This document shows positions 19,140 through 61,800 of a stretch of DNA of 64,000 nucleotides, piece by piece. Both the position numbers and the translations under genes were made by a program. The stretch is from Mytilus californianus (lineage: Eukaryota). The notes under the pieces are model-generated. The model did no database searches and had not been told where the DNA came from. It worked only from the letters and a program-made list of their open reading frames with translations. The stretch lies in contig NW_026262745.1 of assembly GCF_021869535.1 (NCBI RefSeq), forward strand, positions 63,178,001 to 63,242,000. The letters are read 5' to 3'. Position 1 is the stretch's first letter; each line of letters starts with the position of its first letter.

Positions 19140-19615
19140 AATAATCTAATCATATATACCAGGATGGAAATTTTGTATTTGCGCCAGACGCGCGTGTCAT
19201 ATACATTAGACTCATCAGTGACGCTAGAATCAAAAAAAGTTAAAAAAGCCAAATAAATTACGAAGTTGAGGAGCATTGAGGACCAAAAAATTCCAAAAAG
19301 TTTTGCCAAATACAGCTAAGGTAATCTATTCCTGAAGTAGAAAAGCATTAGTATTTCAAAAATTCAAAGTTTTGTAAACAGTTAAGTTATAATTATGATC
19401 ATATCATAAAAGAGTGCTGACTACTAGGCTGGTGATACCCTCGGGGAATAAAAACTCCACCAGCAGTGGCATCGACCCAGTGGTTGTAAATAAACTAATC
19501 ATGGATACTTGGATGGAAATTTTGTATTTGCGCCAGACGCGCGTTTCGTCTACAAAAGACTCATTAGTGACGCTCGAATAAAACAAAAAGTTAAAAAGGC
19601 CAAATAAAGTACGAA
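19140..19615 (-). mobile_element. Retrozyme-like tandem repeat (family H1): two type-I hammerheads 349 nt apart
   Basis: Hammerhead at 19531-19574: CGUCA-CUAAUGA-GUCU-uuugu-AGAC-GAAA-CGCGCG-UC-UGGCG (only a G5A change). Hammerhead at 19182-19225 is more decayed. Confidence 0.8.
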
Positions 19616-20516: not shown

Positions 20517-23500
20517 TTAGTTCCCATTTTCATTTTGAACATTTTGACTGGTACCCAGTTTTCTTATCATTACAAAAACTCTGTGGATTAGCCAAGTACT
20601 GTCTAGACACAAAAGCAAGGAAGCAATTGAAATCAATATGGCAATGCCTACAAATCCAATACTTGCAGACGATTTTCGTGAATCCCATGCACAGGTGTGT
20701 TTTCTCGTATACGCTGATGTTTTTGATCTGTCAACTTTAATCTCATTTACTATTTCGTTGATATTTTCTTCCAATGAAATTTGTTCGGTTACATTATTAC
20801 ACGTGCAAACACAGTATGGTAATTTACCTACAAGAAGTCATTATGATTTTTAAAAAATGTCGTTCTAATGACTTATTCAATATAAGTCTTTCCTTTAAAA
20901 ACAAAATTTATTGTAGTTATAGCTCATTTAACAAAAAAACACCTATTATAATACTTCAAGGATCATTAGATTGTTGTCTTAATATCTGGTAAATAGATTG
21001 TACTGCAGAATTGGCTTCATAATATTGCACCTGCTATTGTTATATATCTGCCTATATTTTTATTTTCTTATCTTTTCCGAAGTCACATGCCAATCTGCTA
21101 TTTTCGAAGGCCATGGTGATAGTTTGTAAAATGGCGTTATTCCTGATTTTTTTGCATTGTTTAGTGTTTCCTGTGTACTTTTTTGTGCATTGTATCAAGT
21201 TTTAAATAAAATTTTAGAGTTTTAGTCAATTCGTCACTCGGCAACGAATTCTCTTTCAAGCTTTAAGATCAATTATAACGTTCAACTAAATGCATTCAGT
21301 CAACAACGAAATGGATTTATTCACCTGTATTAAATGAAAATACAATTATTCTAATTGACATCTTCATATTTACTGGAGAGGTTATGAACACATACCAAGT
21401 AAAATGAGGTATGGTACAATATTTAAAAGTCTGATTTTATAAAAATTCCATGTCTAGTGGCTGTTTATAGCCAGTAAATAAGAGTGAAACGTGGCGTAAT
21501 TGCGTAGATCAAACTTGATATTATCCTTTATTCTTACTAGCCGATAACAATACAATCCGCCATTCTTATTTATAGATATAAACCTTTTACGATTAAATGT
21601 TTTGCCATATGTCGGAAAAACGGTTTATCGTAATAAAACATCAGCACGTGTAGAATTACCTTTATCATTAATTGCAATTATTCATTAGTTGTCAATTTAT
21701 TGCTGTAATGATGCATGCATTAACCTTATTTGTTAATATATCTATTGTTTATCATGTTTATACCTGAGTTTATTGTTGTAAATTCCTTCTGTGCTGTTGC
21801 AAAAATGGCTGTTTTCTCTATTGATGTGGTTTCAGGCTGAGATTTTGTAGTCTGAACAAGTGACGATGTAACTTCTAATGCATATGTCACGTGATTTTCG
21901 GTGGTTTGATGAATAGACGATTTTTGTGTCGATGTGGTTGTGGACTGAGATTTTGTTGTGTGAAGATCTGACGATGTTACGTCTACGGTAGCAGTCATGT
22001 GGGTTTCAATTGTTAATGCTGTTGTTTCCGTTGTCTTTTCTGCAGATGAGACTTTAAAAGTAGTTGTTTGTTTTTGTGTTGTTGTTTCGTCAATTGCTGC
22101 CACACATGAAACACATCTACTAACAACAGCAGATCCACAATCATCATACGGTGCCACACTCAAGACATTAGTATCTTCATTTACTGTAATACAAAGAATT
22201 ATAAATATGGATTTTGTTACAATACATGTTGTCATCATTTGAGTTTCTATATAATCGAAAGTAATTTTAACATGTATAATAGTAACTGCCAGTAGTTACA
22301 GATCTATAAAAGAGGGGCAAAAGATACCAGAGGGACATTCAAACTCATAGATCGAAAATAAACTGACAACGCCATGGCTAGAAAAGAAAAAGACAAACAG
22401 ACAAATAATAGTACACAAGACACAACATAGAAAACTAAAGACTTAGCAACACGAACCCCACCAAAAACTGGGGGTGATCTCAGGTGCTCCGGAAGGATAA
22501 GCAGATCCTGCTCCACATGTGGCATCCGTCGTGTTGCTCATGTTATTACAAACCCGGTAAATAGTCTAATTCGGTAGGTCACATTCGTGAAAAGGGAACG
22601 GGATTGTAGTTACGACATAAGGAACATATCCGATATCATCTGTGAAACGGATATTCCATTACGGTCAACCAACTCGTGATGGCGTCCGTAAAATTTACGA
22701 AGGGATGATGTCCTGAATATATCCTGTGTTTTGTATTGCTGTGAGGGATGCATAATTACCCTGTAACGTTGTTGCTGTGCTTTGCTGTTTTTTTTATCTG
22801 ATGAGATAAGTCCTTTTCCACTGATTTGTAAAGTGTATTGTTATGTTGTTCTGTTACACCACTGTCTCAGGTTTGGGGAGGGTGGCGCCTTGAAACATGG
22901 TTTATTTCGCCACAATCTGTATGTGCTTCTCATAATTCAGGAGCCTGTAATTCAGTTGTTGTAATTGGTTCGTGGCTGTCATATTTGTTTTCCGTAAGTT
23001 GTTTTGTTGAATATTAGGCAGTTATTTTTCTCAATAGGATTGTTTTATATGTTTACGTATAGTTGGCTTTCATAGCCGACTAAACGTTACGGTTTTTAAA
23101 TCATTGTTGAAGGCTGTTCGGTTGCCTATAATTGCTGACATCCACTTCATTTAAACTTTTGTGGATAGTTTCCTCATTGGAAATAATACCATATCTCTTA
23201 TTCTAATTATAAATATGATCTCAATGCAGGCAAGCAATCGTTCAACATTATTCCTTATTAAACCAGTATAGTACAGTGTGTTATAACAATATAACAAATA
23301 TGTTTTACATTTACACTATGTTATATTGGTTCAACCTTGCATTTTTTTTCATTTGGCCTGAGTATTAGTCATTCATTTATTTATTATTTATTTATTTTTG
23401 CAAACTAAATAAGAAGAATAAAATAATAGGATAAAAATCTTACATTCAAAGTTACACCTCTTCATATACAGAGTTTCAACCGAAGAATAAACCTTGTTAT

Positions 23501-26500
23501 TTTCCGTGTAAAAAGGATCATCAATCTGGTCATACATCACACATTTAGGTATAGAAGGTGTAAACGCAAAGCCCCAGCACTTATGATCCCGACTGCAATC
23601 AGTTTTACACTCTTGTTCTGTTCCAGGGCTTTTTTCGTTATTTTGTCCATTCATTCCAGTTGGTACCGTTGTATCGCCTTCAGTATCATAGAAAATGTCG
23701 GAACGGGGAGAACAGATAGCTAAAGGAAAACGTTAAACCAGTATGATTAGTTAATACAAAAATGATATTTTAATTAAAGTTCACTGCAAGATCTACCGAC
23801 ATAAAAAAATCATCAAAGTTACCATGCTTATAATTTGATAAGTCAAACTGCAGGAATGGCTTATCAAATACAAAAATGATGAGCACAAAAAGTTACAAAA
23901 GTTTATGTCGAAATGTGCTTAGACAATATTATATATATATCCCTGGTGGAATCATAACCTTGGTGTTCAGAATATTTGAACATTTCATTAACAGTAAATT
24001 TACAGCAAATGACGATTTCAATGATATTTCTTGTCAATACAAATGTGCTGACTACTGGGACGTGAAACCATTGGGAATAAAACGTCGACCAGCAGTGACA
24101 TTAACCCAGTGGTTATAAAACTAATCAAAGATACCAGAATTGTATTTCGGTACGCCAGACGCCCGTTCTTCGGCAATAGACTCATCAGTGACACTAGAAC
24201 TAAAATAGTAAGAAGGCAAAATCAATTACAAATTTAAAAACCTAAAATTCCTAAAAGTTATGACAAATACGGCCAAGGCGGTCTATGCCGGTGGAAGATA
24301 AACCATAGTATTTCGCAGAGTTCAACGTTTTATAAACATTAAATTTACAGTAAATGAACATATTATGTATATTATTTGCCAACACAAAAGTGATGACTAC
24401 AGGGACGATCATACGCGCAGGGACGAAAGGTGAACCAGTAGTGGCATCAACCTAATGGTTGTGAAAATTCATCAAAGATACCAGGCTTATTACTTGGTAC
24501 GACAAACGCGCATTTCGTCTTCATCGCGCTCAAATTTTAACAGTTGTAAGGACAAATCAAATACGAAATTGAAGAGCATTAAAACCGAAAATTTCAAAAA
24601 GTTATGCCTAATAGGGCTAGACCAATATATGTCTGGGAAAGAGAAACCTAAGTGTTTCAAATGCAGAAATATTTCAAGAGAGTAAAAAATATGTTAAATC
24701 ATTATTTGTATTTAAAATCTAATGAGCACGTTTTCTGTTTTTATTCTTATTTTCGTCAATGGTTTGAGACAACAGTAGTCAACAGATGTTCAAATCTCTT
24801 CAATCGATTAAGAATATACAAATCAAGCTTAAGGTAACAAAGAAAGTATGAGAGAATCGCATGAATTTCAAAAGGAATAAGACGGGTGCATCTACGGGTC
24901 TAGCGTTTCCTGCTATGAATGTATTGCTCGAAGAGGACATACACCATTTATTTTGACACATGAAGAATGAAAACAAATTGAATAGGTGCAGCTTGGAAAT
25001 TATCCACACACACAAACGGTGACTAAATAAGTAAAATAACCACTATTACCTTCTAAAAGAGGGGCGAAAGATACCAAAGGGACATTTTAATTCATATGTC
25101 AAAAATAAACTGACAAAGTCATTTAAAAAAAACAAAAAAAGACCAAAAGAAAAACCGCAGTAAGCACAACATAGAATATTAAAGACTGAGTAACACGAAC
25201 CCCACAAAAAAACAGAAAAGATGTCGGGTGCTCTCATGTGGCAGCAGATCCTGCTCCACGTGCGACACCAATGGTGTTACTCTTATAAAATTCGTTAATA
25301 TAAATATCAACTGATTAGGCATTACAGAAATAGTGGATTGTTAAGTGTCTCTTATCTAACAATAAGACATCATCAAATTAATAAACCGTTGGTCAAGTAA
25401 ATGTTCCTAACCTGAAACTTGACCGACTGTGCACATTTGGAATCGAAACACATTTTTCATGGCAAGGGATAGACAAAACAGTTAGCGTTACACACAACAC
25501 AGACATTGAAAAATTAAAAAGCACAATGAACAGCACTTATCATTTAAGCCAGAGCAACACGAACCCCTTTTAAACAAAACTAAGGCTGATATCAAGTGCT
25601 CCGGAAAGGTAAGCAAATCCTGCTGCACATATGTCATCGGTCGTGTTGGTCTTGTAAGTACAAACATGGTGATAAGTCAAATTCAGTTTGTCACATTCGG
25701 AAATGAGAGAACCGGATGGTGTAAGCGACTTTTGGAACATATCTGTCGTCATCTGTGAAACAGATATTCACTAACAGTCAAACAACTGGTGATGGCGTCT
25801 GCAAAATGTTAGAAGGGATGATATCAAATTCACCACTTGCTATTGAAACTCTTTGTTTAATAGCTTCCTTGTGACCAGCAGCCCTCCTTCATAATAAGAA
25901 TTGCAAGCCCTGTAATAGCACCAATTGGAGATACGTACTCCAGATGTAGGCGCTGATGGAATGTTTCTACATATAAATGGAAAATTTACAATTAAGAAGC
26001 TGAAATAATCTCTTTTGTAGTAAAGGTTTGTCTCAATCGACCTTCATTGTCAATTTCTAGATGAAATTTAAGATATGAGGCAGGGTTAACTGTAGCTTGT
26101 GCATCGTATATTTCAAATTTGTTGTAATAGATTCGTTTAACATAGTTTCCAAACTTTGAATGATTAAGTGAGAGGACATCATCTATATAGCGGAAAGTGA
26201 AGTTAAAGGATAATGTTAGCAAAATGTCCTCTTCGAAGTTAATAGTGTAATCACGCCTTCAATTTCCAAATGGTGTAATAGTTAATAAGCATGCTATCTT
26301 TAAACTGATTTATATCAAGACACACCAATCTATCTTTACTGAAAGCTGAAATTAAAGTATTGGGACAGCTTCTTTCATTTTCTTAAACCCTTACCAAAAG
26401 AAGAACTTTGGTATACTAAACTTTTCAAAAGATTTTTAGTGTGTTCATCCTGAATTAATTGCAAGCTTTATAGATACAATATGTCTGATGTTTGTGTACT

Positions 26501-33985: not shown

Positions 33986-36900
33986 CTTCATTCCCTTAAT
34001 ATTTAACAAAACATAGCAAAAAATACGTTTGAAATTTTATTTACAAAGAAGGGCATAATGCAAATAAAAATATTAACAAAAACATCATTCATATTCATAT
34101 TTATATCAGCATGGTTTTTTGTGACTTTATATATATGTTAGATTAAATATTGTTATTATACTTATATCAATAAGTTAAACAAATAAGGCTATTTCCGTGC
34201 TTTATTACTTGTTAAGTTTATTGAGAATAAACTTATTACAAAAATGTATAGCTTTTTCTTAAACAAATGTATTAGGTTAAGTACCTTATTTTTTTCGAAA
34301 TTGAAAGACATATTGATTCTGATATTTAAAGTTACGGTGAAATAGATTGAAAAAAAAATTAAAAAAACTACTCTTGTTTGTATGATATTATTAAAGACAG
34401 TCATATGTTCATTTCAGCTATATGTATATGAGACTGCAGGTCAAAATTTTTATCTAAAGTTGTTTTTATTTAAGGATTATAACCCATTGTGGCTACTATA
34501 AATTATTGTAACTTAACACCTGCTGTTGGACTACTTGCTCCAAAGTTATCATAAGCTTAGTAATCATTTGCTTCGGTACTGATATGATTAAGGTTTTCTT
34601 AAATTTAGAAATTATTTCGAATGAAATATTTGAACTCCGTGAGGCAAAGACAACCTTAGATGTATTCGGCCATTTCCCTTTAGGCTACCGAAATATGCTT
34701 ATACGCCATTTGCATCTACATTCTTAAGATTGGTCTTCCTTTGTGAAGGCGACTAGAGAAAACAGGCTTTGATATACAGCATCTCTTGAAAAAAGTTCTT
34801 ACAGTATTGTTGACATTTCGACAGTGAGACAGAAAAACGTAAATGTTCACTGTTCTTTCAAAAGGATTAAAGTTTTACATGTTTTACAATGCATGTAATA
34901 CTGTTTCAACCTAACCTTGACAACTATATACATATACCTCAGGAAATTACTCAAAAGGGTTTTGCTTAAGGTAAAAATACTTTTTTAACATTTCTTAATA
35001 TGCAGGTGCTTATCTACAGAAAGGAACCTAGACATCGGTCTTCTTTAGTAACATCTTCAAAGTTGATGATTTTGTCCGTTAGAGGATTTTGTGCTGAGGG
35101 CAGGTATTTGAGAGTATCTATTGGAATTATTTACAAAATCTAAATCTATATAAAAATAAAAAGATATAGTATGATTGCCAATGGGACAACTATCCACCAG
35201 AGTTTAAATGAAGTGGATGTTAGCAGTTATAGTCTAGCGTTCTGAATTCAACAATGAGAAAATCTCATATCGTGTAGTAGGCTATGAAAGGTTCTGACGT
35301 GAATAATGTAAAACAAGTCAAACGAGAAAACTAACGTCATAATCTATAACAAACAATTCATGAATCACAAATATGACAGAAATACATGTTTCTCATACAA
35401 GGTATAATAACAAAAAATAATATATATAGGTATCTTCGTATATATAGAAGCAATGATTATACTTGTGAACTCGAATGACGATGATATAATTTTGCATATG
35501 TATTAATGATAATAAATTTATTCGTAAACAATACAGCTCATAGAATATATACAATTAACAAATATTCCCAGCATCATAGCATAAGCGTCCAGCTAATAAT
35601 TGTCAAATCACAATGGCAGAGAATTATACAATGCAGTCAACAATTACTGAATTTTTCAGTAAGATATAGATATTTTCCTAAATTGTTCAATTCTTTTATA
35701 TAATGGACACATGATATTTGTACAAGTCTGAAAATAGGATGTTCTTCTCCAATAATATGTTTTGATATACATTATTCTTTTTTAGCACATTTTTCTCAAA
35801 CTAAAATAAAATGATACTCGTCTTCAATTAAATGTTTGGCACAATCGACATTAACGCATATTTTGATCAATAATATATACCGATTTCTACAGTCAAGCTT
35901 TGAGATGATAAGCGATATTTGCAAATGAACGATTTGTACATATAATTCATACTACGATCCAAAAAAAATTGCAACTCATGACCATATGGTTCATAAAGAA
36001 ATCTTTAATTTCCGTTTTCACAAGTTTATAACACCTATCAAATTGATTTTTTTTACGGTTTCTTCCACAAACAAAAAATTGACTGCCACAAAATAACCAA
36101 TAGTGCTGGAATTGGCTTTAAACAAAACGTTTTTTTTTTGTTTTCGTTATGCGCATGCATAAAAAACTTTTTCAGTAAATCTCAATAAATTAGAAAAAAC
36201 AACATCTCAATGTAAACAAAACAGGTATTTATAATGGTTTTTACGATCTAGACGTGTACTTAATAATAATAAAAAAAACTTAAGTCTTGTCAGACACATT
36301 TTACATGCATTCATTCGATATGACTGGTGCAACTAGACGGTCTGAAATGCATTCACCATCCGGAGCACATTCCTTTGTTCGGATTCGTGATGCTCAATCT
36401 AATAAATAGGTTTTCGGTGTATTGTATTGTTGTTAATGTTTGTCTTTTGTCGTTTTAGTATTGCTCATAAAGTTGCCTTTTTGTATTACACTTGATATCT
36501 CCTTTCCCTATTTATATGACTTGTGTGTGAGATAAACCACTTTCAGTATCTTTCAAACCTACTTCATATGAAATAAAATTGGACTTATTTCATTCACACG
36601 ATTAACGAAACACATGAACTCTGAAGAATCAAAGAGAATAAAAAATTCACATTGAATAACAACATCGAAACTTATCCATCAAGTGAAAAGTGGTCATATT
36701 CTACTTATGTCGTTTATGACAATTTTGATTAAATGTCGCAAATTTTATCTGTTTTTTACATTTTGAAAACAGTCAAACAAAATGTGCAAATTGTATATGC
36801 TTTTCTACAAAAGACTCATCAGTGACGCACGAATCAAAATTTTAAAAGACTAAATAAAATACGATGTTTAAGAGCATTGAGTACCCAAAAAATCCAAAAA

Positions 36901-37211
36901 AAGTATTGCCAAATACAGCTAAGGTAATCTAATCATGGAGTATAAAAACCTTAGTATTCGAAAAATTCTTTAAGTTTTGTAAACAGTTAGTTTATAATTA
37001 TAATTCAACTATATCAAAACCATATGATCATAACCGAGCTTTGTGGTATAGGTGAACACCAGACTAACCATATTTCCTTGTTTGAATAGTTGGTCATAAC
37101 CGAACCGTTGTGACTTGGGACCAAAAAACATACATGATATACAAGAACTATCCACCAAACGCCAAAGGACTGAATGATGAGGAAAAACCCGTATAGTAAG
37201 CTAAACCCTCC

Positions 37212-37392: not shown

Positions 37393-37465
37393 TAAAGAAG
37401 GCCGGGCATGACAAAGCGTGAAAATCTTCGAATGATAAAACCAACGGTCTTATAATTTTAGTATA

Positions 37466-37790
37466 AATGAAGGCAACAGTAGTATACCGCTGTTCAATAG
37501 TCATAATTCGATTAAGCAAAAACAAATCCTGGTGACAAACTAAAACCGAGTGAAACAAATCAATTATAAGAGGAAAATAACGGAACACTAGAAACTACAA
37601 CAAAAGCAAACGCCAATGTACATAGAAACGGACTGTATATAACAACTGTTTTATTCCTGACTTGATACAGGACTTTAAAGAAAAAATGGTGGGTTGATCC
37701 TGGTTTTAGGGCTAGCCAAACCTCCCGCGTATATGGTAATGTTCAAAATACCGCTAAAATGACAACACTACGTGACAGGAATAAAGTACA
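37466..37790 (-). mobile_element. Z-related repeat with a twister relic (37645-37735)
   Basis: GCGG-GA-GGU ... CAA-CCC-ACC ... CCUG-UAUCAAGU-CAGG. The same body starts again at 57385-57470. Confidence 0.6.
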
Positions 37791-38134
37791 AACAAACGAA
37801 AGAACACTCAGCACAAACCGCAGAATAACAACGGACACCTCCCATGAATTAACGACAGAACACCAGGACACCACAAACAAAATATAAACTGCGCGTCACA
37901 TGAATGAATCAACGTCACAAAAATTGACGTATTTTTAAGACGTTTATATTATCAGAGGTAATAATGATAAAAATTATAGAATTATAAACATAACAACGAC
38001 CTTATTCTCTATTCTATTCAGTAGTTCGTACATGAACTGTCTGAAGATTTCTATACACGTCACTCCTTTCTTTGAGAGATCAATTCCCCTTGACCTACAT
38101 CATATTTGAAACATATTTCTCTATATTTAAAAAA

Positions 38135-39070
38135 AAAGAAGATGTGGTATGATTGCCAATGAGACAACTCTCCACAAGAGATGAAATGACACAGAAACTT
38201 AAAACTATAGATCACCGTACGGCAATCAACAATGAGTAAAACCAATACCGCATAGTCAGTTATAGAAGGCCCCTAAATGACAAAAGTAAAGCTATTCAAA
38301 CGAGTAAACTAACGACCTGATGTATGTACATATAAAGAACGAAAAACAAATATGATAAACAGCAACAAACAACAACCACTCAATTACAGGCTCCTGACTT
38401 GGGACAGGCACATATAGCATGTGTGTGTGGTGTGGTGGGGGGTGGGGGGGGGGGGGGAGGGGGGCTGGAGGTTAACCAGTTTGAAGGCGCCAAACCTCCT
38501 CTTACCTGGGACAGTGGTGTAACGGTACAACATAACAATAAACTATAAAAATCAGTTGAAAAGGGCTCAACTCTTCAGATGGATATAAAGTAAAAATACA
38601 TCTAACAAAAACACAGAGTGGACGTGGCAGGGTACTTATACATCCCCACAACAAAAAAGACATTAAGTACAGATCTGAGAATAATCACAGTTACTGACAA
38701 CTAGTTCAAAGCCAATAACAACTAATAAAGAAAACATGCATCTAAGACAAAAATATCAATCATTACACATCCAACATCCAATGGATTTACTGTAAAGACG
38801 TCATTAACAGTCAGAGAAAAATATGACCTTATGTAATGCAAAGATACAGGTATCGCCAGATTGTAGAGCCATGCATAAGCATATGTATATAAAGTAAATT
38901 AAGCTTAATTTTAATTTACTGATAACAAAATTAATATTAATACCAATAAAAACAATATTCAAAGATATAGTTATAGTGTTGAATTGGTAACCTTTAAGAA
39001 AAAGTTTATTTAAAGGATCGATAAGTTTACCCAGATCGTATCTAAATTTCCGGACTCGCTAACCAACATT
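38135..39070 (-). mobile_element. About 940-bp family-Y repeat with an internal twister (38387-38512) broken by a poly-G/GT expansion
   Basis: The 3' half GCCUGUCCCAAGUCAGGAGCCUG and P5 CAGGU/GCCUG are intact. Its upstream body also occurs at 14800-15225. Shorter Y copies at 18940-19085, 22830-23212, 31440-31600, 35160-35380 and 46770-46850. Confidence 0.75.
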
Positions 39071-39626
39071 TTAGTAAAGTTTTGTTTGTATATGTTTGTA
39101 GTGGTGTGCTGTTGGCTTCTAAAAACATTGTAATTTTGATATACGTTCAGTATGCAGTGTATACGTATACAGTAACGTCTCAAATTTAAATAAACGAAAC
39201 ACATGTTTTTTTCTTTTCTTAGACATTGTCATTTTGTACCAATTTAGTTTGGTCATAGCACGTAGTTGTTTGTGATGCTCCCAAGTATAGCCAACAATAT
39301 GACATTACTGAACAGCTTTACGGCATATCAGCCATTAAGGAACCTACAATTTTTCTTTGATACAGTACTGTTTTTATTGTTATGTTCTAACTTTATATCT
39401 GTAGTACTTGCTAATAGAAAAAAGCTTTTCTTGCAATTTCTATGATTCAAACTAAAATGAATGAGGGTAGAAATATCAAATAAAGATCTAGGTTAACCCG
39501 CCAACAGTTCATTTCTCACTCAGAAACCCCGTCAATGGTTGTTTTCTGTTAAATTTTAATGATTTAGTTTTCTGGGAATATTGAGTTTTACTGTGCGTAT
39601 TGCTGTGTGTTTGTTTATTCTACATT

Positions 39627-39718
39627 GGCTAGAGGTATAGGGGGAGGGTTGAGATCTCACAAAATATGTTTAACCCCGCCGCATGTTTGCGCCTGTCCCT
39701 AGTCAGGAGCCTCTGGCC
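39627..39718 (+). ncRNA. Type-P5 twister ribozyme, best-preserved copy (repeat family X, 39585-39955)
   Basis: GGCUAGAGGU-AUA-GGGG-GA-GGG-[P1]-UAA-CCCC-GCC-GCAuguuUGC-G-CCUG-UCCCUAGU-CAGG-A-GCCUCUGGCC. 10-bp P5, plus P2, P3, P4, T1 and T2 all pair; catalytic G at 39644; predicted cut 39671/39672. The only core deviation is a conserved L4 A changed to U (39700). Confidence 0.8.
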
Positions 39719-41683
39719 TTTGTTAGTCTTGTATTTTTTTAAATTTTAATTCATTTATATGTTTTGGAGTTTAGTGTGACGTCCATTTTCATTGAACTAG
39801 TACACATTTTTGTTTAGGGGCCAGCTTAAGCCCGCTTCCGGTTGCGGGATTTTCTCGATGTGTTGAAGACCAATTGGTGGACTCGGCTGTTTTCTGCTCT
39901 TTGGTTAGGTTGATGTCTCTTTGACACGTTCCCCATTTCCATTCTCAATTTTATGTTGAAGGTCAAACAAGCTATTTTAACATTTCTAAATATACATGTG
40001 TCTGTCCAAAAAAAGGAACCTAGTCATTGGTTTTCTTTTGTTACATCTTGATGTTTTTGTTCGTAAGTGTAGTTTTTGTTCAGAGCAATAGACTTTTTCG
40101 ATTTATTTACAAAATCTTAAACTAAACATGCTTATCATACAAAGTATATTAACAAAATCAATACCATGAAACTATTAGTATCGTCGTATACAAAGAAACA
40201 ATGATTAGACTTGTCATTTATTCATTGACACAATGTTCACGAATATCAAGACATTAATTAATCTTTGAAATAGTCGAGTTAAGTCTTTTATCGGCAAAAA
40301 CCTTACTCATGTCTGTTAATTTTTTTAATATATATTTTATTCAATGTCGTCAGTAGGTTTTATATCAGTTTTCCATATTCATTGTAAACGTTTTAACTGG
40401 TACCCGTTTTCCTGAACAGTGCAAACACTCTGTAGATGAGCGAAGTACTGTCTAGACACAATAACAAAGATGCAATTGAAATCAATATGGCAATGCCTAC
40501 ATATCCAATACTTTAAGACGATTTTCTTGATTCCAATGCAGATGTGTGTTTTCTGGTATACAATGATGTTTTTGATTTGTCAACTTTAATCTCATTTACT
40601 ATTTCGTTAATACTTTCTTCCTATGAAACTTGTTTGGTTACATTATTAAACGTGCAGACAAAGTATGGTGTTTTACCTACAAGAAATCAAAATAATCAAA
40701 AAAAATATTTAACTACTAAAATAGTTAGTATATGACTTATATTTAATAAAACAATTAAATATAGCGAAAGATACTTAGCAATACAATCCCATACAAATAT
40801 TTCAAGGCTCATGATATAAAAGAAGGTAATCAAAGTATTTTTTGACTTTAGACATTAACATAAAAGTAATAATGAATAATATACTATATGAATTCAGTTG
40901 TTAGCAAAAATTGCAGCTTATTTATCGTTATAACAGCATCGCGAGTAAAATTATTCTATTATTGCAATTATTTGTTATTTCGCTTGATCATTTATTGATA
41001 GAATGATGCATTCATTCACCTATTTATTTATTTTTATATCTTATATACACCTGCGCTAATTGTTGTAAATTCCTTCTGTGTTGTTAGATCAATAGTAGAT
41101 TTCGCTATTTATATGGTTTCGGACTGAATTGTTGTTGGGTGAAGATCAGACGATGTTACTTCTACGGTAGATGTCATGTAGTTTTCAGTTGTTGCTTGAA
41201 ATGTTGTTTCTGTTGTCTTATCTGCAGTTGAAACTTTCACAGAAGTTGTTTCTTTTTGTGTTGATGTTAGATACTGTGGTGTTGTGTCCTCCGTTGCTGG
41301 CACACATAAAACACAATCACTTATAACAGCAGATCCACAATCATCATACGGTGGCACACTCAAGACATTAGTATCTTCATTTACTGGGGAAAAAGACAAC
41401 TAGATTATTTGGTAATTATTATCATTCATGTTTTTGTATATCATTGGTAGTAATTACTAGATATAATGTATGTTAAAGTTAATGCATGTTGTAAGGTTTT
41501 TCTGTCTTTTTCTGAATGGTGTCAGGATTGTCAAATGAAAAACCGACCGTAGCTCTTTCTTTGGGCAATCCTGACACCACGAGGTGTGTTATACGACTAG
41601 AAAATCCTTACAATATGCATTATCAGAATAATATACTGTCGAAACATAAATGATTGGCAAAATTTGTTTAAAAATTGTATCTA

Positions 41684-41780
41684 TTCATACAAGTTTGAGG
41701 TTTAGCTATCTCTAAAACCAGGTTTATTCCACCATTTTCTACATAAGAAAATGCCTGTACCAAGTCAGGAATATGACAGT
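41684..41780 (+). ncRNA. Twister relic, family Z (element about 41670-41890)
   Basis: GAGGU ... GCCUGUACCAAGUCAGGA intact; P2 broken. Confidence 0.65.
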
Positions 41781-42235
41781 TCTTATCCATTCGTTTGATA
41801 TGTTTGAGCTATGGATTTTGCCATTTGATTAGGGACTGTCCTTTTTGAATTTTCCTCGGAGTTCAGTATTTTTGTGATTTTACTTTTTCCTTTTTACCGA
41901 TCATATTGAAAGGGAATATACTTTTCGTACATGTCTTAAGCGGTTAGGTATAAACACGACTTATGGCAATTGTTTAATGTGAAATTAAAACTCAAGTATT
42001 AATCTAGATATAAACGGTAGAAGCCACTGTTCAGTTAAAATATAAATATAGCTGAAATGACACATGATGTATTAAGATTCATGAAAAATTCAAGTCACTC
42101 TGTTACATGTAGTAATTTGTCATATAAACTATATAAAGGGGTACATTGTTTTTTATCTTGTTTCCCGACAATTTTTTGTCGCGGAAAAGCAGATTATTTT
42201 TAAACATATATATATGTATTTTAACAGACTTCAGT

Positions 42236-42340
42236 ATTATTTATTTATTGATGTATTTATTTGTTTTCTATTTATTTATTTATAAATTTATCTATTTATC
42301 TATTTATTTATTTATTTATTTATTTATTTATTTTTTATTT
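42236..42340. repeat. (TATT)n microsatellite just downstream of D exon 5 (AATAAA-rich on the gene strand)
   Basis: Seen directly. Shorter versions occur at the same position in B (about 6335), C (about 23375) and E (about 57020). Confidence 0.9.
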
Positions 42341-43767
42341 GTCTTCTTAATAAAAAAACAAAAGAAAAAGAATCGTACAATCAAATTCACACCGTTTCAT
42401 ATAAAGGTCTTCACCCGATACGTAAGTCTGGTCATTTTCTGTTCTGAAAGGATCGACATACTGATCATACATTACACACTTAGGTACAGAGGGGTTAAAT
42501 ATAAAACCCCAGCAGATAGGCTTCGCATTGCAATCATCTCTGCACTCTTGTTCAGTTCCAGGGTTTTTCTGCCTAATTCCACTCATTCAAGTAGGTACCC
42601 GTGTATCGCCTTCGATATCATATGAAATTTCAGAATCACAGATAGCTAAACGAAAACATGATATCATTGATACAAAAATTATATTCTGTTTGAATATAAC
42701 TTAAAGATATAAGAACATAAATATTTAAACATGAAAAAAACCCACCTTTAAACCGTTGTAAATATGTTATTTTTATGAGACAATACCAAGTTTTATGATT
42801 TAATCTAAATTCTCGAAAATAGATTTAGCAACAGTACCTATGTTACTATAATATAGATTATTAAGACATTACAAGTTATGGTCGTCGTTTATTTAAACAT
42901 CCTTAACGGACCGGAATAAGCTTAGCTGTAACGGTGGGTTAATTATGTACTGCATCTGAAGACCTTGTCTACACATAGATTCAATGACAATACAAGGAAT
43001 GACGAATTGAACAGACATTTATTGGTTAACACTACCTGTATTTGATTCACATATAAATGGTTTTGTATCTGTTCCGCATTCAGCTAAAAACCAAAACATG
43101 CTTCCACTTTCTACTTCCACATAAGCGCATAAATCATCATTACTACTATTCAAAGAAGGTGGCCAATTTTCAAACCAATATGGCGGAAAACAGTTATTCG
43201 TCCATACACGATTAGTTGTATCTGGAACATGTAATCCAATCCAAATTTCGTTTAGACTGGGATTTCTAAAAATAAAACTTAAACAAGAATACGTATATAT
43301 GGATATATTACGTATTGGTTATAATGATCACGTGTTTCAAAGGTTTTGTCATGTATGTAAAGCCTTGTTTCAATTTTTAAGTTTATTGACGCTATGTTTT
43401 TATTTATATGTATATTCACGGTCAATATTAAAAATCTTGCTCAATTCAGATCCGGATATAAAACATTCCGGTCCGAAATAACTGTACGTCATGACGTCAA
43501 ACATAACAATCAAGGGAGACCGCAACAGACGAAAATCATATAATTTGAATTCTTATTTGTTCTAAAAAGAAAAAAAAATGTTTTGTTTTTGTTTACATTA
43601 AAACAAGTTCATCTTTAACCATCGATATTTTCAATTGCATGTTAAAATCTTGGAAAATACAATAAAAAATACACAGAAAGAACATTGAACGCCATTTTCC
43701 TAATACATTATTTACATATATAATATAAAAATTAAAGACTTACTCAGTAAATTCGTTATATATAGTA

Positions 43768-46468: not shown

Positions 46469-49400
46469 TTTATTAATTAAATATGTGCATACAGTGTTTA
46501 TCTTTTTTTTGTGTTTTATTTCCTTTCACAAGATTTTAACATGTTTTACATTGAAATCGAACTATCCAAATTTGAGTTTTCTTTTATAAGCTGCAATGTC
46601 AAACGATTTGGTGCTGTTTAGAAGAGTCTTCTACATTTTTTGATGATTTGTTAACCCTTTTCAGTCACTATAAAGTATTACAATACATATTCAGATGCAA
46701 TACATAAATAGTAATTGGAAAGGTACTGCCATTGCATGAGAGATTCAGAAACAAAATGACTAAATAAAACTAGGAGTTGAATATGATTGCCAATGAGTCA
46801 ACTATCCATAAAGACTTGATCAATAGATTACAGGTCATCCTTCAACAATCCATATGAGGTTCGGGTTGAAAAATATATGATACAAAAACATGAGATGCGA
46901 AAGTAAACAGTAAATTGAAATGCACTCATTAAACTGATAAACTGTTTTAAATAGTTATGAGGTTGACAAAAAATGAGCTTTGTGATAATCTACAGACTCG
47001 TTTCCCAAACCTGAAATAATTCAATTGTCTGGTTATAAAATGCTTTTTCAAATGAATGTGACCGTCTTCAGCCTGAAATATTTGCAACACTGAACGTTTT
47101 GGCATGTTTATGGTGAGTAAATAAAACAGCGTCTTCCAAACAACAGTTTACATTACGTTGTGTTTATCATGACTTTCGATCTAAAAACTAGAGACGTTCA
47201 GAAATCCTGTATTGGACGGATGAGAACTCGGCCAATACAGAAAAAAATCCATATTGGCCGAGTTGACACTTTTGTATAGCAAAGGTAGTTATCATCTATT
47301 AAGTCCAATAATAGAGTAGTTAATTAACAATGATAAATATTGATTAGACAATAATTGCTTATTCAAAATTAGAATCATGTGCAGAAAGTTACAGTTCGTT
47401 ACATTTTGTTGTTATCATTTTCGTAATAGGCATTTTGGTTCACGTTTTTTAACGTCAATATATATAATAAGATGCTACAACTTTAGAGTGTGTTTAACAG
47501 TAAAATGTTCAAATTTAAAACGTCACTAGGCATAGCTGACGTCAAATTATAATTATGACCAATATCAATCCGACACCAAACGAACCACACATTGATAATT
47601 TAAGAAATAAATCTATTGTAACATGTTCTTTATGTTAAGAAGATGTGGTACATGTGGTATGAGTCTCCATCAAAGTCACAATGTATCAAATGTTAATAAA
47701 TATAGGTCATACTACGGCCTCCAACACGCCGCCTTGGCTCATACCGAACAGCAAGCTATAAATGGCCGTTAAATGAACTATAACAGTTCAAACAGGAAAA
47801 CAGATGATCTTATCTATATAACAAAACGAGAAACAATTATAGACCACTCCAAAAAAAGACAACCACTGAACAACAGTCTCCCGACTTAGCACAGGTGCGT
47901 GAACATGCAGCGGATTCACCTTTAACTGCGACAGTAGTTTATCATTACAATATAAAAACACGCACTATAAAATATCAATTGAAATTGCTTAACTCAATCA
48001 CAAAAGACATTTAAACTAAAATAAGTAAACCTTTACTGATATTGGCTTTTTCAAATATTTTAGCAATTTATCTGTCAATTTGTTATACGTTGCTATTGAA
48101 CGGTATACGATGTCCATTAATATTTGAAAGGCAGACATTTATATTTGATTGTGTCTAAACTTTCTAGATAACACATGGTTTTACAATATAAAACTTATGA
48201 AATATATTTAAACTTGCTGTTTACAAGAAAAAAATTTCATTTGAAATGAAAAATATGGTGCCGTTTAAAAACAGTTGACGTTAACAATACTTTTTCATGA
48301 CACGCATGTGTATTTTGTGTCTTATAGGAAGAAGCATGTGTAAAGATTTACAACATTTCTAGATTAAAACGATGTATACTTATAAATGACTGGTATTACT
48401 TTTTAAAAATTTCTAAGGAAAACTTAATCCTGTGTTTACAAACATTGCTGTATCGTAACCTTTAATGGAATACATCTGTATGTGTTTTCCGTGATACCTT
48501 GCAGTCTGGTTTTTCTCTGATAATTTTTCCAACAAAAAAAAAAGCATACAGTCAAGTGTAGCATGTCATTATGAATCAAAATAGGTAAACAAATTTAGTG
48601 TCAATGATGGCATAAGATGGTTTAAGAAAATTCTTTTAGTCCTTAGCATGTCTAAGCTGTAATATTTTTTATTTCCGATTTTATTGACAGTGACCAAAAG
48701 AAAAACATGTATTCTTGAAACACATTATCAGCCGATATCTCCATTTATTTAAATGCGAAAAAAAATCACAATTTTCAGGCAAAGTTAAAAATTGACCGAC
48801 TGTTACCTTGTCTCCCCTTTAGGTCCAAATTTACTTCCAATTACTATAATTGAACAACCCAAACATTAGATGAAAGCCAACATAGGAAATAAATCAAATA
48901 TATGAGACCGTCAGTTAGCATCAAAGTTATAATGGACTTAATTTAGTTCTATGCAGTTTACATCATATTTTTCTATGCATCATTATATAATTGTTTTAAT
49001 CTTTTTTTTCTGTAGAGGTAAAACATTTTGAAAATGATATATGAAGGAAGCCAATTTTCGTTTATTTTTATCTCCTTTTGAAAAGGCACCATATTACCTA
49101 TATCTTTACAAGATATACACACAGTTCTGTCATTTTCTTTATACATATAACATTACTTTAATCTGAAGAAATTGAAATACTAATATATTTACATCTCCAG
49201 TATAGCTTTTTGTAAGTAAATTTCCTTTGCTTGTTGAGCAATAGCCACTAAATTTTGTCCTATACTCTTACAATATTTGTTAGCATCGTTCCAAGTCATC
49301 GGATCAATGAATAATGTTGTGGAAGCTGTAATCAGGACATATTGATCTGAAAAGAAAACATCGCTATATAATGTTGGTCCTTTTAAGTTTCATGATGTAT

Positions 49401-51908: not shown

Positions 51909-52008
51909 ACTGTCAAACACGTGAGAGGTTTAGCTTGCTATAAAACCAGGTTCAATTCACCGTTTTCTACATAAGGAAATGCATGTACCAAGTCAGGAAT
52001 ATGACAAT
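51909..52008 (+). ncRNA. Near-intact twister, family Z (element about 51840-52115)
   Basis: GUGA-GA-GGU ... CAA-UUC-ACC-[P3]-G-CAUG-UACCAAGU-CAGG. T1 and T2 intact; one P4 mismatch; position -1 is C. Confidence 0.7.
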
Positions 52009-54776: not shown

Positions 54777-57351
54777 TTAACTGGTACCCAGTTTCCTTAG
54801 TAGTGCAAGCACTCTGTACATAAGCGATGCGCTGTCTAGACACAATAGCAAAGATGCGATTGAAATCAATATGGCAATGCCTACAAATCCAATACTTGCA
54901 GACGATTTTCTTGAATCCCATGCAGAATTGTGTTTTCTCGTAAACGCTGATGTTTTTGATGTGTCCACTTTAATCTCATTTACTATTTCGTTGATACTTT
55001 CATCCAATGAAACTTGTTTGGTTACATTGTTACATGTGCAGACACAGTATGGTCTTTTAACTGAAAGAAATAAAACATAATTAAAGAAACATTCTATTAA
55101 ACTGTTCAATATAAGTCTTATATTTTATCAGACGTTCCTTTAAGAGTAAGTATAGTGTTTATCAAACTGAATTGAGTCCAAGTGTACATGCATTAAATTT
55201 GTCTTACATGACATTTTTACATTGACTTGACTTGATAAGTAGTGAACAATTTCAAAAAGACTGAGCTGCAGAACAATATTGTCTCAAAGCTCTATTTGCA
55301 GGTGGCTGCCTCATGCCATTAATTACCAGTTGAAGCGATGTATTATTCGTAAGCCATATTCGGTAATAGCCGTCATTCTTAAAATCTTGCCTTTTAATAT
55401 TTTGTCGTAAACACTGTTTACCCCCTAAACATCTTCATTGGTACAAATATTCTATGAATAACAATTTTTTCCTTCATTGCCTCATTTATTGATTTAATGA
55501 TGCATTAATTTACCATTTTATTCATAATCAATGTATCATTTATATACCTGCGCTAATTGTTGTTAATTCCTTCTGTATTGTTTGATCAATTGAAGATTTC
55601 GGTATTGATATGATATCGAGTTGAGATGTTGTTGTGTGAAGATTAGACGATGCAACATCTACTGTAGATGTCATGTGGGGTTCAGTTGTTACTGGTAGTG
55701 TTGTTTCTGTTGTCTTATCTGCAGTTGACACTTTCACAGAAGTTGTTTCTACTTGTGTTGATGTTAGATATTCTGTTGTTGTCTGCTCCGTGGTTGTCAC
55801 ACATAAAACACAATCACTTATAACAGTAGATCCACAATTATCATACGGTGGAACAATCAAGAAATTAGTGTCCTCGTTTACTTAAAACAAAAAACATATT
55901 TTTTATATGCATTTTGATATTGAATTTCATGCAACTGTCATACAAGTGAGAAATTAAACTAGCTATATAACCCGGTTTAATACACCATTTTCTACATGAG
56001 AAAATGCCTGTTTTAAGTCAGGAATATGACAGTTGTTATCCATTCGTTTGATGTGTATGAGCTTTTAATTTTGCGATTTGATTTGGGACTTTCCGTTTTG
56101 AAGTTTTCTCGGAGTTTGGTATCTTTGTTATTTTACCATTGATTCTCTTCATTCATGTTTTGTATATTATTTGTAGAAATTACAAGACATTTAAAATAAG
56201 GTAAACCAACCTTTCAAGCTTTTTCTGAATTAACTGCGAATATTCTGTCATAATATATAACAATATTAAACAAATATAATGTATACCGTATTTGGTATTT
56301 ATTGAATATTATACAATTATTGTGGCCTTTTATCTATTTCTTGCATGAATAGATATTTCTCGTATCACACTGCACGGAATGTGAAACGAGAAAGTGATAC
56401 AAAAATATGCGTTAATTTGAATGGCTTCTTCAGCATCACAAGACGATATTACGGCACTTCCATTGGTTATTCGTTAGGTCAATGATGACTTTCAAAGGTT
56501 AAGACGATGTACAGTTCGTCCATGGCAACGAACATTGTGATGTCTTCAATTATATACAAAACACTCACACATTTCACCTGACAATCTTCTTTGTGTCAAA
56601 TTTTATTACATTCTAAATCGTACAAAAAGTATTAAAATATCTGATGTGAAAGTTTGACATCGGAAAATGACATATGACGTCATACTGGAATGTGCAAAAT
56701 ACTGGATCAACATTTCGCGGAATTTTTAATTTTACACATTGAGAGTGTTGACCAGAAGAGAAATAGGTTTAACAACTTGTGAAAATTGGATATCACTTGA
56801 TATCAACCTCGTTATTTAATTTAGATAGTAATAATAATCTCGCCGTAGGCTCGTTTATCATTATATTGAAATTGAATAAATCGAGCTGATATCAAGCGAT
56901 ATCCCATTCTCACTGGTTATGAAACCAATAAATATATATTCCTGTTTACTGAATATTTTTATTCGATACAGTTTTATTTCTTCATTTATCTTTGATGACT
57001 TGTGTTTGTTTACTTATCCGTTTATTTCTTTATTTCTTTATTTCTTTATTCATTCTAAATTAAAAAAGGATAAAAATAACTTACAATCAAAGTAACACCT
57101 CTTTATATACAGATCCTCAGCCATAACAGAAATCTGATTATCTTCTAATCGGAACGGATCATCAAAAACATCATACATCACACATTTAGGTACAGAAGGG
57201 GTAAAAGCAAAGCCCCAGCATGAAGTTAAAGGATCACAAAAATCTTTACAATCTTGTTCAGTTCCAAAGTCTAGTTTAGTGTATCCACTCATTCCTGTAG
57301 TAACCTTTCTATTGCTTTCAGTATCATAGGAAATTCCAGAATTACATATAG
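54777..57351 (-). CDS. Paralogue E, 3' part (PAN, mucin and TM exons); upstream exons not found in the window
   Basis: Exons 57085-57351, 55548-55880, 54777-55060, with the same lengths as B (267/333/284 nt), open frames and GT-AG junctions. About 85% amino-acid identity to the PAN exon of B by hand alignment. Confidence 0.85.
55934..56033 (+). ncRNA. Twister, family Z; duplicate of the 5864 insertion
   Basis: Perfect P5; T1 reads UU/AA rather than CC/GG. Confidence 0.6.
56779..56913. repeat. About 135-bp imperfect palindrome capped by GCC-GTA-GGC
   Basis: Arms GATATCACTTGATATC..AATTT and AAATT..GATATCAAGCGATATC; apex at 56842-56850. Confidence 0.8.
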
Positions 57352-58877: not shown

Positions 58878-61800
58878 ACACAGTTATTTCGTAGTGCATT
58901 TCTTTTAGATAATAAACGAAAAAAAAAAAATCCCACTTGCGCTTTCTCCAAAATATTTTTTCAGTGTGTTGTACTATTTTTGGGACAAATTATATCAAAA
59001 TTATAGAAAACTTCATCAGCTCTAACTCAAAACATAGACAATTTTATGTTAAGGGGGTTTTGAAATTTTTTGACAGCTTCCGAAATGCTAATTTTTAACC
59101 TTTTTCAGCTGGACCAAATCACTACTTTACTTTAAAATTCATGACCCACACTTTTTTACAGTGTAATTCCATTCCCCCACTTGCTATTTGAGGCATAAAA
59201 CATGAAGAAATAAATTCGGAAAAGGTATAACAAAATTGCAAGTAACCCACTGTCCACACTAGAAACTATATTCGTGGACAACGAAAATCAAAGGACGATG
59301 AATGTGTTCCCGGACCTAATAGGATAGAAAGACTTAACCACTCTTAATGAAAATTGGAATGACCAAAGCTAAATCAATTATAAGACTAATGACAACGTTT
59401 CATGGCAATAGGTTATATACTATAAACAAAATGATAAATTCTATATTCATCTTTGCGTGTTAAATTTTGACGTTAAAATTAAAAACAATTCCACTATCAA
59501 CATTTAGGGCTTTAAAAACTATATTATTGCAAAAAATTCATTCTAAATGCCTTAATATTTCATATATCATGCATAAAAAGCAAAAGAAAACTCATTTGAT
59601 GTATCAGATTTATCACAATTATTCAAAAGTCAATTTTATATGAGCCTGTGCCTGAAAATTGAGGGTCTCCAATGAAGGGGGGCCTTACATGAAGGTGTAA
59701 TATTTTCCAGCAATTCTAAATTTGTAAAGTTTTTTGGTTATAAATAATCCTTACATATGTATTTAATGTACTTGAAATTAAAAGAAAAATGCAATTAGCA
59801 TATCATATGAGTATAAATGGTCTTAGGCCAAGAAAGACTGAAAATAATGTAGGATCAATTTAGGCCGTATCACATATTTACATTTGAAAATGCATACTGA
59901 AGCTATAGGAAATAAAATAAAATATTTCTTTTTAATCATTTCTATACTCAGGTTACATGATACAATAAATCTGTGTACAAAAGGACTCTTGCATTCAACT
60001 TTTTTGGCAGACAGTATGGTCTAATATAACGATTTTTCACTTTTAAGTGAAAGACTTGCATGCAATTTCAGTCTCAACAGGCACATATTTGAACCACTTG
60101 CTATCAGAAGAAAAGAAAAGAGGGACGAAAGATACCAGAGGGACAGTCAAACTCATAGATCGAAAACAAACTGACAACGTCATGGCCAAAAATAAAAAGA
60201 CAAACAGACAAATAATAGTACATATGACACAACATAGAAAACTAAAGACTAAGCAACACGAACCCCACCAAAAACTGGGGGTGATCTCAGGTGCTCCGGA
60301 AGGGTAAGCAGATCCTGCTCCACATGTGGCACCCGTCGAGTTGCTTATGTTATTACAAATCCGGTAAATAGTCTAATTCGGTAAGTCACATTCGTGAAAA
60401 GGGAAGGGTATTGTAGTTACGACATAAGGAACATATCCGATATCATCTGTGAAACGGTTATTCCATAACGGTCAACCAACTCGTGATGGCGTCCGTAAAA
60501 TTTACGAAGGGATGACCTCAACTTCACTATTTGGAACTCTTGGTTTAATAGCTTCCTTGTGAGCAGCAATCCTCTATCAAGGAAATAATGATAGGAAACA
60601 CAAGCCCGGGAATATCGTATCAATTGGGAGATATATACTCCGTATGCAGGCGCTGCTGGAATGTTGCTACATAGAAATGGAAAGTTCACAATTGGGAAAC
60701 TGAAATCATCTCTTTTGTCGTAAAGTTTTGTTTTCAACCGACCCTCATTGTCAATTTCTAGATGTAAGTCAAGATATGAGGCAGATTTAGCTGTATCTGT
60801 AGTATCCTTTATCTCTAGTTCGATGGGATAGATTCGCTCAACATAGTCACCAAATTTTGTATTATTTAGTGAGAGAACATCATCTATATAGCGGAACGTA
60901 GAATTAAAGGATATTGCTAACTTCTTATCTCTCTTCCTAAGAAGCTCCTGTATGAAGTCAGCCTCATAATAATAAAGAAACAAGTCGGCAAGAAGAGGGG
61001 CACAATTGGTTCCCATTGGAATTCCGACAGTCTGTTGAAAAACACGTCCTCCAAACGTAACAAATATGTTGTCAATCAAGAAATCAAGCATCTTGATAAT
61101 GTCAGTTTCAGAGAATTTTTTGTTTGAATCAGAGTGATTCTTTACAAAGTAGGATTTATCCCTCCCCAAGACAAGATACTTGTATCTACGTTCGCCATTC
61201 TTTTTAATGAAACAAAGTAATACCAACTCTTTCAATTTGTCTTTTAGTTTGGAATGGGGAATACTTGTGTAAAGTGTAGAAAAGTCAAATGTTTTAATAC
61301 TATTGCAAGATGAGAGAGTCTTAGATTGTATGTACTCTAAAAGATCTTTGGATTTTTTTAGTATCCACATCTGATTCACGCCACCTCTAGAATAGGCAGT
61401 TTCACAATAACTTTGGAGCCCGGCTTTGATTGCTGATAAAATAGATGTTAATAATTTAGAAAGAGGTTTCGTGGAGCACTTCGAAGACCCAGCAATATAC
61501 CGTTGTTTGTAAGGACACTTATGTAGTTTAGGTATCCAATACAGTGATGTATGTGCAATGAAACAAGTACAAAAAAGATATTGTAAAGTGCTTTTTATAC
61601 AAATTAAGTGACAGCTTTATTATGGACTTCAACATCTATGTACCACGTTTCTTACTTTTAACATGCTTCAAAAAGGGCGTAAAATTACAAGCAATCATTC
61701 ATACAACATAATTTGCACATTTTGTCAAAAATAATCTACTTTTCTGTAGATTCAGAGTTCACAAATGAATAATACAACTTGATGAAAGCCTGGAAACACA

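Follow-up and report, generated by a model that had tools for sequence, protein, structure and literature searches.

A candidate type-P5 twister module in the 3' tails of Naiad-type Penelope-like elements of Mytilus californianus

What is the core that recurs in interspersed repeats with otherwise different bodies throughout the window (the whole 64,000-nt stretch of Mytilus californianus DNA analysed here), which elements carry it, and does its RNA cut itself? A first-pass annotation had proposed a hidden twister ribozyme in the type-P5 permutation. Although this class of ribozymes has been studied in depth, the only role documented for it in eukaryotes is to process the 5' end of an RTE element in a fluke. 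Our preferred reading, to which we give a probability of roughly 0.6, is that the ~90-nt core is a twister-class module of type P5, built into the sense-strand 3' untranslated tail of Naiad-type Penelope-like elements and presumably self-cleaving; families X, Y/W and Z would then be the tails of different element families.

Anatomy of the core and its copies in the window

The flagged copy belongs to family X and is composed, from 5' to 3', of the following blocks:

39627-39718, + strand: X-family core, 92 bases (covariance model, 75.2 bits)
39627-36, +: P5a, GGCUAGAGGU, a 10-nt strand, followed by AUA
39640-43, +: P2', GGGG
G39644 and A39645, +: the GA
39646-48, +: T1', GGG, followed by a 23-nt insert
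39650-59, +: palindrome 1
39662-71, +: palindrome 2, degenerate in this copy
U39671|A39672, +: predicted cut, with A39673 as the second A
39674-77, +: P2, CCCC
39678-80, +: GCC triplet
39681-90, +: P3 hairpin, followed by G39691
39692-39707, +: P4/L4, CCUG-UCCCUAGU-CAGG, followed by A39708
39709-18, +: P5b, GCCUCUGGCC, partner of P5a
39582-39955, +: whole X-family insertion at this site (self-BLAST, family consensus, read depth)

This block order is that of a twister ribozyme opened at P5. The anatomy was compared with the twister segment table of Liu et al. 2021 (PMC8501958) and with the Rfam type-P1 consensus (UAA-cgCc-GCC-[P3]-G-CCGG-UCCCAAGC-CCGG-gUAAA-gGcg-GAGGG), whose upper-case positions are all matched in the flagged copy with two exceptions: the final loop base is U instead of C, which yields a G.U pair in T2, and position 39700, the first conserved L4 A, is T. 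Of the RNA reads that stem from other copies, 95-99% have A here; the flagged copy itself is a mutated relic. The insertion around it is a 5'-truncated 3' tail devoid of ORF and SECIS, with a sharp common 3' end at 39954/5 and heterogeneous loose read ends behind 39954; RNA read depth over it begins near 39571.

At least seven families (X, Y, W, Z1, Z2, Z3 and Z4) combine this common core with different bodies. A profile and a covariance model were built from 29 copies and, with nhmmer and the covariance model, 13 core copies or fragments were located in the window, at exactly the sites that the first-pass annotation had listed. Besides the flagged copy, they are:

3788-3848, -: Z-type half-site, 5' half of the core only (36.6 bits)
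5866-5960, +: Z1 core, T1' and P2 mutated (82.6 bits)
17386-17471, -: X core, catalytic GA reads UA, P2 CCUU/GAGG compensated (76.9 bits)
18845-18942, -: degenerate W-like core, 150 nt downstream of the 18995-19076 core on the same strand (22.4 bits)
18995-19076, -: Y core, L4 A to C (38.9 bits)
22865-22949, +: degenerate Y-like core (27 bits)
37648-37738, -: Z2 core, L4 is UAUCAAGU (T1 wobble), P5 decayed (58.2 bits)
38385-38511, -: Y core, 5' half broken by a C-rich low-complexity insert (36.8 bits)
41683-41777, +: Z1 core, second A after the cut site is U, P2' mutated (76.6 bits)
47872-47931, -: W core, internal deletion between GA and P2 (36.1 bits)
51911-52005, +: Z1 core, single P4 mismatch, CAUG/CAGG (72.1 bits)
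55936-56030, +: Z1 core, L4 and T1' mutated (75.8 bits)

Each of the 13 carries at least one defect at a conserved position; all are 5'-truncated, mutated relics, and so are most genomic copies. The 16-base P4/L4 core CCTGTNCCAAGTCAGG has 10 matches in the window with at most two mismatches (0.05 expected), and its exact matches in the 1.65 Gb genome number 49,783, compared with a single one for the reversed control. A 354-kb sample of copies held 67-70 core sites, and its unbiased part gave about one site per 8.5 kb.

The Rfam twister-P5 model, proposed as a check in the first-pass annotation, failed to recognise the core: it gave no match at E<=10 (161 bases around the flagged site; whole genome), and RF02684 run on the whole window gave none at the gathering score or at E<=10. 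The single Rfam twister match in the window is RF03160 (twister-P1), which covers the 3' half of the Y core 18995-19076 with 15.8 bits (E 1.9, gathering score 67.2). We attribute this failure to the long P1 and P3 inserts and to the absent P1 pairs and read it as a limit of the models rather than as a refutation, the check itself having nevertheless come out negative.

Several other features lie among these copies. A degenerate type-I hammerhead is found at 19181-19224 (-), with the CUGAUGA core and helices I and II visible and the GAAA lost (Rfam Hammerhead_1, 19.6 bits, E 6.2), and resembles the mussel retrozyme hammerheads that Cervera and de la Pena are said to have described in 2020. The hammerhead-like repeat family to which it belongs (19139-19396) has further copies at 19488-19615, 24153-24342 and 36806-37001; a link with the neighbouring Y core was considered and rejected, self-BLAST placing the two in separate repeat families. 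The C-rich run at 38425-38470 (-) shows many variable-length back-joints in RNA reads, probably slippage or mapping noise. Finally, 8142-8231 is an almost perfect hairpin of 90 nt built around a (TA)n centre, with spurious miRNA matches (mir-559, 51.9 bits). It may mark the junction of an inverted repeat at a TA microsatellite, reportedly the preferred target of Naiads.

The host element

Reverse transcriptase (RT) coding sequence is found next to several of the cores. In locus L038, an X core (7117-7201, -) is located 320 nt downstream of a 431-aa ORF with the RT motifs FDFSTLYT, IPMGTNCAP and RYLDDIL. This ORF stops ~220 aa past YLDD without a GIY-YIG domain and is followed by UTR, as in L051-L061, and a SECIS lies 52 nt past the stop (SECIS_1, 31.7 bits, below the gathering score of 35). 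Read upstream, it has an in-frame TGA just after PTDKAANNISIV and the motifs PTDKAAN and SKGPKY. Using tblastn, RT homology was found directly upstream, on the same strand, of X cores (L001, L003, L005, L019, L020, L022 and L038), of Y cores (L050 and the 38.4-kb copy of the window) and of Z2 cores (L007 and L021). Two upstream regions of this kind belong to the window:

17682-17746, -: SECIS-like element upstream of the 17.4-kb X core, same strand (SECIS_1, 26.2 bits, below gathering)
38746-39076, -: RT C-terminal fragment (39076-38912; tblastn), then SECIS-like element (38812-38746; SECIS_1, 24.8 bits), upstream of the 38.4-kb Y core

The first-pass description of the repeats as non-autonomous retroelements thus does not hold for X, Y and Z2, which have an RT ORF or fragment upstream on the same strand. 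It may still apply to Z1, Z3 and W: no RT was seen upstream of their copies in the 354-kb sample and, as no ORF was seen for them, these families may be non-autonomous derivatives. The core is found 240-340 nt from the 3' end of the element tail. Tandem cores occur in L051 (845 nt apart) and L053, and in L043 and L023 a core precedes the next RT, in a pLTR-like arrangement.

According to Craig et al. 2021 (PMC8557442), Naiads are diagnosed by DKA in place of DKG, by GxKF/Y and CxC motifs and by a C-terminal RT; in clam families a SECIS follows right past the stop, and heavy 5' truncation and partial tandems are further traits. The elements described here, taken together with their relatives in other assemblies, have a C-terminal RT without downstream endonuclease, the DKA, GxKY and CxC motifs, an in-frame TGA together with a SECIS, truncation and tandems. 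Searches of Pfam and PDB with the RT ORF and with the upstream ORFs yielded no usable match and recognised neither the RT nor the EN domain, so that Naiad membership rests on motifs; a large protein search returned 4587 homologues, all unnamed. Judged by these motifs and by their position, the X, Y and Z2 copies represent the 3' tails, truncated on the 5' side, of Naiad-type Penelope-like elements that encode an RT. The core is shown to be physically linked to this RT: it lies 220-500 nt past the stop codon of the C-terminal ORF, with a SECIS between the two in certain families.

The window also holds a 320-aa RT ORF (60417-61379, -) that is 43% identical to the L038 RT and has PLE-type motifs. 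No twister core was found in its tail (59600-60416, -), which instead has a GC-rich hairpin, CACCCCCAG UUUUU GGUGGGGU; hence not every Naiad-like family here carries the core. A further RT fragment at 25843-26207 (-) shows 38-40% identity to the L038 RT, with no core detected downstream.

The fold is kept by compensatory changes in the mussel and in other species

The families differ in nearly every helix, as summarised below:

P5: GGCUAGAGGU/GCCUCUAGCC (X), CAGGC/GCCUG (Y), UCAGGU/AUCUGA (W), CUGUCAUA/UAUGACAG (Z1), UGCCAUAU/AUAUGGCA (Z2)
P2: CCCC/GGGG, ACCC/GGGU, CCUC/GAGG or CCUU/GAGG
P3: hairpin differing from family to family
T1, outer pair: C-G (X, Y) or A-U (every Z family)
T1, inner pair: C-G, with U-A in W
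T2, first pair: G.U or A-U

Since the P4/L4 16-mer had served to find the copies of this genome, P4 had no room to vary among them, and relatives were therefore sought elsewhere through the protein: homologues of the upstream protein were taken and their flanks searched with the covariance model. RT homologues with 50-62% identity lie upstream of cores in five other assemblies (ERZ25069870, ERZ25069865, ERZ27289022, GCA_002832875.1 and GCA_040793815.1), the cores being 220-500 nt past the stop codon. There, P4 is AUCG/CGAU or CCG/CGG and the first T2 pair is C-G, while the outer T1 pair is U-A in L055 and the inner one A-U in L060; in certain single copies from other species, C replaces the first conserved L4 adenine.

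The relatives have a single ORF with, in order, a GIY-YIG-like N-terminus, a KR-rich block, CxC, GPKY, DKA and an in-frame TGA. In L058 the motifs read CSC, GPKY and ADKCSN, and in L061 CDC, GPKY and ADKAAN; both proteins start with (I/M)QYVGxTG..R..H, with E..WI.KL...PLGLN, followed by the KR-rich block, and Pfam gives them no match to GIY-YIG, the endonuclease that Naiads carry at the N-terminus. The TGA is at the codon after DKAxNxxxV in five loci (L038, L056, L057/58, L059 and L061). The L056 contig (GCA_040793815.1, JBFNJT010000082.1), which has a Naiad-like ORF and the start of a twister core, is filed under a bacterial symbiont bin, 'Candidatus Thiodiazotropha sp.', and is most likely misbinned clam host DNA.

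Pairing was scored in three alignments, with shuffles and slid partners as controls; the shuffle control leaves relatedness in, whereas the slid control removes it and scores far below the observed values. With 29 copies, 84.1% of cells were paired against 72.2% after shuffling (reached by none of 500 shuffles) and 30-43% with slid partners; T1 was 90.8% paired, with two-sided changes at 3 of 3 pairs, and T2 100%. With 67 copies, decayed ones included, the figures were 79.8% and 68.0%. With 41 copies, other species included, 84.9% of cells were paired against 67.9% shuffled (0/500) and 34-44% with slid partners; two-sided changes occurred at 25 of 28 pairs (0/500 shuffles) and the covariation score was 0.466 against 0.198. 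In this last alignment, P4 was 95.4% paired, with CG<->AU, CG<->UA and UA<->CG changes, T1 87.7%, with two-sided changes at all three pairs, and T2 98.7% (GU 19, AU 17, CG 2). P3 was 84.2% paired, P5 82.1%, an underestimate like the other P5 percentages since the model left one-base P5 register differences between X, Y/W and Z unfixed, and P2 70.6%, a low figure due to the Z-family register.

The fold, including both pseudoknots, is thus shown to be kept by compensatory changes, here and in other species, as the first-pass annotation had argued from differences between families: P2, P3, P5, T1 and T2 differ with compensation, above shuffles and slid controls. G.U pairs are frequent and fit one strand only, so that the structure belongs to the sense RNA. 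The conserved twister nucleotides (N|A-A, G-A before T1', the GCC-type triplet, CC-AAG in L4 and the A after P4) are all kept in the consensus of X, Y, W, Z1, Z2, Z3 and the other-species families. The block anatomy and the other-species relatives agree with the twister identity, the P5 permutation and the predicted cut site that had been proposed.

Cutting, alternative readings and known systems

The first-pass annotation had bracketed a P1 between GGN and the cut; no P1 stem adjoins the cut site, and two self-complementary blocks take its place. After GGN come a U, a perfect palindrome of 6-12 nt, a spacer of 1-2 nt and a second palindrome with N-1 as its last nucleotide:

Palindrome 1: UGAGAUCUCA, GGGAUCCC, UGGUACCA, GGCGCC, UAGCUAGCUA, UAGCGCUA, UGGCUAGCCA, AUGGCCAU, CGGGCCCG
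Palindrome 2: AAACAUGUUU, AAACGUUU; AAACC-A-GGUUU in Z
Palindrome 2, other species: AAACCGGUUU, AAAUGCAUUU, AAACGCGUUU

In the Z families, P2 is moreover just 3 bp long and bulged. A loop-less palindrome cannot form a full hairpin alone, and its perfection despite sequence change points to pairing between copies. Minimum free energy folding recovered P5, P4, P3 and often P2 and predicted domain-swapped dimers to be more stable; this stability was discounted as evidence for pairing, being expected of any palindrome. P1 is dispensable in twisters, at lower efficiency (PMC8501958), and in the hammerheads of Penelope-like elements, which cleave in dimeric form, the loop of stem III is palindromic (PMC6765202).

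The raw reads of four RNA runs were aligned to 37400-42400 at 88% likeness or more. Reads cross the predicted site (depth ~600-1260 at 39661 and ~490-1630 at 39700), and the RNA 5' ends at U|AAC that the first-pass annotation had suggested looking for did not pile up at 39671/2: in the four runs, no position qualified as a start or end of many molecules. Reads were about equal on both strands and hence give no sign of a dedicated transcript. Cut RNA, if a common template, should also give genomic copies starting at AA; counts of exact X matches with a pattern extended 4 nt at a time across the site were 7460, 6846, 6433 and 6082 (ratios 0.92, 0.94 and 0.95), with no 5'-truncation step at AA in X copies. 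Both tests are blind to cutting that is rare, pair-dependent or soon followed by decay. They argue against efficient cutting by single copies and fit either a non-cutting structural element or a pair-dependent ribozyme, for which there is room since most reads and copies are solitary truncated tails.

RNA reads from one organism label, in runs X22-X24 but not in X21, join 40049 back to 39618 (432 nt), with 19-24 nt on the two sides. This back-joint was rejected as a circular RNA in view of its short sides and of the repeat-module borders at which it lies, and suggests that the modules are arranged differently at another genomic site, or that they form tandem units.

In the preferred reading, the RNA would cut itself just 5' of the AA, after an N-1 nucleotide that is U or C (39671|39672 for the flagged copy). 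By analogy with the hammerheads of Penelope-like elements, this cleavage might process transcripts of tandemly inserted copies. With P1 replaced by palindromes, the second of which ends in N-1, a P1 could form only between two copies; speculatively, palindrome 2 would supply it in trans and cutting would need a pair of ribozymes. A Naiad twister whose P1 forms only in trans via the palindrome at the scissile end, and which cuts when two copies meet in a tandem pseudo-LTR transcript or as two RNAs, is a tentative proposal that we hold to be possible. Less likely than the preferred reading is a structured 3'-UTR element, descended from twister or convergent with it, which no longer cuts and might serve RT recognition or priming, or RNA stability. 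The fixed distance of 240-340 nt to the 3' end of the tail would suit such a role, as would the missing P1, the C found for the first L4 adenine in certain other-species copies and the lack of both an RNA end pile-up and a truncation hot spot at the site. Yet a purely structural role has no obvious need for catalytic nucleotides, and every family consensus keeps the GA guanine, the adenine following the scissile bond and the AAG of L4; moreover, both negative tests are also expected of a ribozyme that depends on pairs or whose products are short-lived.

That X, Y/W and Z are independent non-autonomous, SINE-like retroelements, each with its own twister, is improbable. Such elements would account for the similarity of the Z1 and Z3 consensus sequences fading ~100 nt upstream of the core and for the 354-kb sample showing no RT upstream of Z1, Z3 and W, and non-autonomous derivatives with common 3' ends are known for related Chlamys elements (PMC8557442). 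Heavy 5' truncation, however, explains the short copies, and RT ORFs or fragments immediately precede the X, Y and Z2 cores on the same strand, a linkage repeated in five other assemblies. A chance twister resemblance in a conserved repeat core, or a palindrome or hairpin signal acting at the DNA level, is hardly credible: the Rfam models are indeed silent and palindromes could in principle be DNA sites, but this reading is already contradicted by the compensatory changes at 25 of 28 pairs, both pseudoknots included and above every shuffle and slid control, by G.U pairs being tolerated on one strand only, and by the match of all twister blocks in order and identity.

If the twister of these Naiad tails is active, the use of ribozymes would be general for Penelope-like retroelements. 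[quoted passage not shown] Activity would also add an estimated 10^5 twister-derived sequences per mussel genome (~1 copy per 8.5 kb in the unbiased sample) and would offer a natural system for studying a P1-less, possibly dimer-dependent twister. Rfam-based annotation misses every one of these copies. Were P1 formed in trans, the module would stand as the first twister to act obligatorily as a dimer, and as an independent second dimer case after the hammerheads of Penelope-like elements.

The first-pass annotation had left the novelty of these repeats to be checked. In a search confined to literature outside subscription journals, we found no paper describing these repeats as twister elements and no description of a twister in Penelope-like elements, Naiads or bivalve repeats. 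In that literature, twister was found linked only to the Schistosoma Perere-3/RTE elements and, in an unpublished remark, to RTE 5' ends; the topic's most active group, in a paper of November 2026, still cites the Schistosoma work only.

The type-P5 permutation reportedly goes back to Roth and colleagues in 2014, and hammerheads of Penelope-like elements are said to have been described by Cervera and de la Pena in 2014 and by Lunse and colleagues in 2017. The mussel core has the same circular block order as the type-P5 twister (RF02684), namely P5a, P2', GA, GGN, P1 region, N|AA, P2, RCC, P3, P4, A and P5b, and shares with it the 8-nt P4 loop U-N-C-C-A-A-G-Y and the pseudoknots T1 (L4 with GGN) and T2 (RCC with the L4 end). 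It differs in that two perfect palindromes, within an insert of 22-25 nt, replace the P1 stem next to the cut, in its long P5 (6-14 bp), in the 3-bp bulged P2 of Z, in scores below all Rfam twister thresholds and in a cleavage that is predicted. The central domains of mollusc SINEs (MESC, Nin-DC and V; Matetovici et al. 2016, PMC4758252) are likewise ~90-nt blocks found across differing repeat bodies; contrasted by description, they follow tRNA-derived heads and have no assigned fold, whereas the mussel core follows an RT ORF and has a covarying fold.

The T-variant twisters of Perere-3 (RTE) in Schistosoma mansoni (Liu et al. 2021, PMC8501958) are likewise twister-class, integral to a retrotransposon transcript and present in high copy number. 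They are of type P1, sit at the 5' end and cleave immediately before the element, with flanking sequence supplying P1 (PMC8501958). The mussel motif, by contrast, is of type P5 and belongs to a Penelope-like 3' tail, so that its cut would fall inside the element. The hammerheads in the pseudo-LTRs of canonical Penelope-like elements (reviewed in PMC6765202) share with it the kind of host, the site in a terminal repeat or tail, a palindrome beside the cut and the tandem layout; they belong to another ribozyme class, and the dimer action that is conjectured for the mussel motif has been demonstrated for them.
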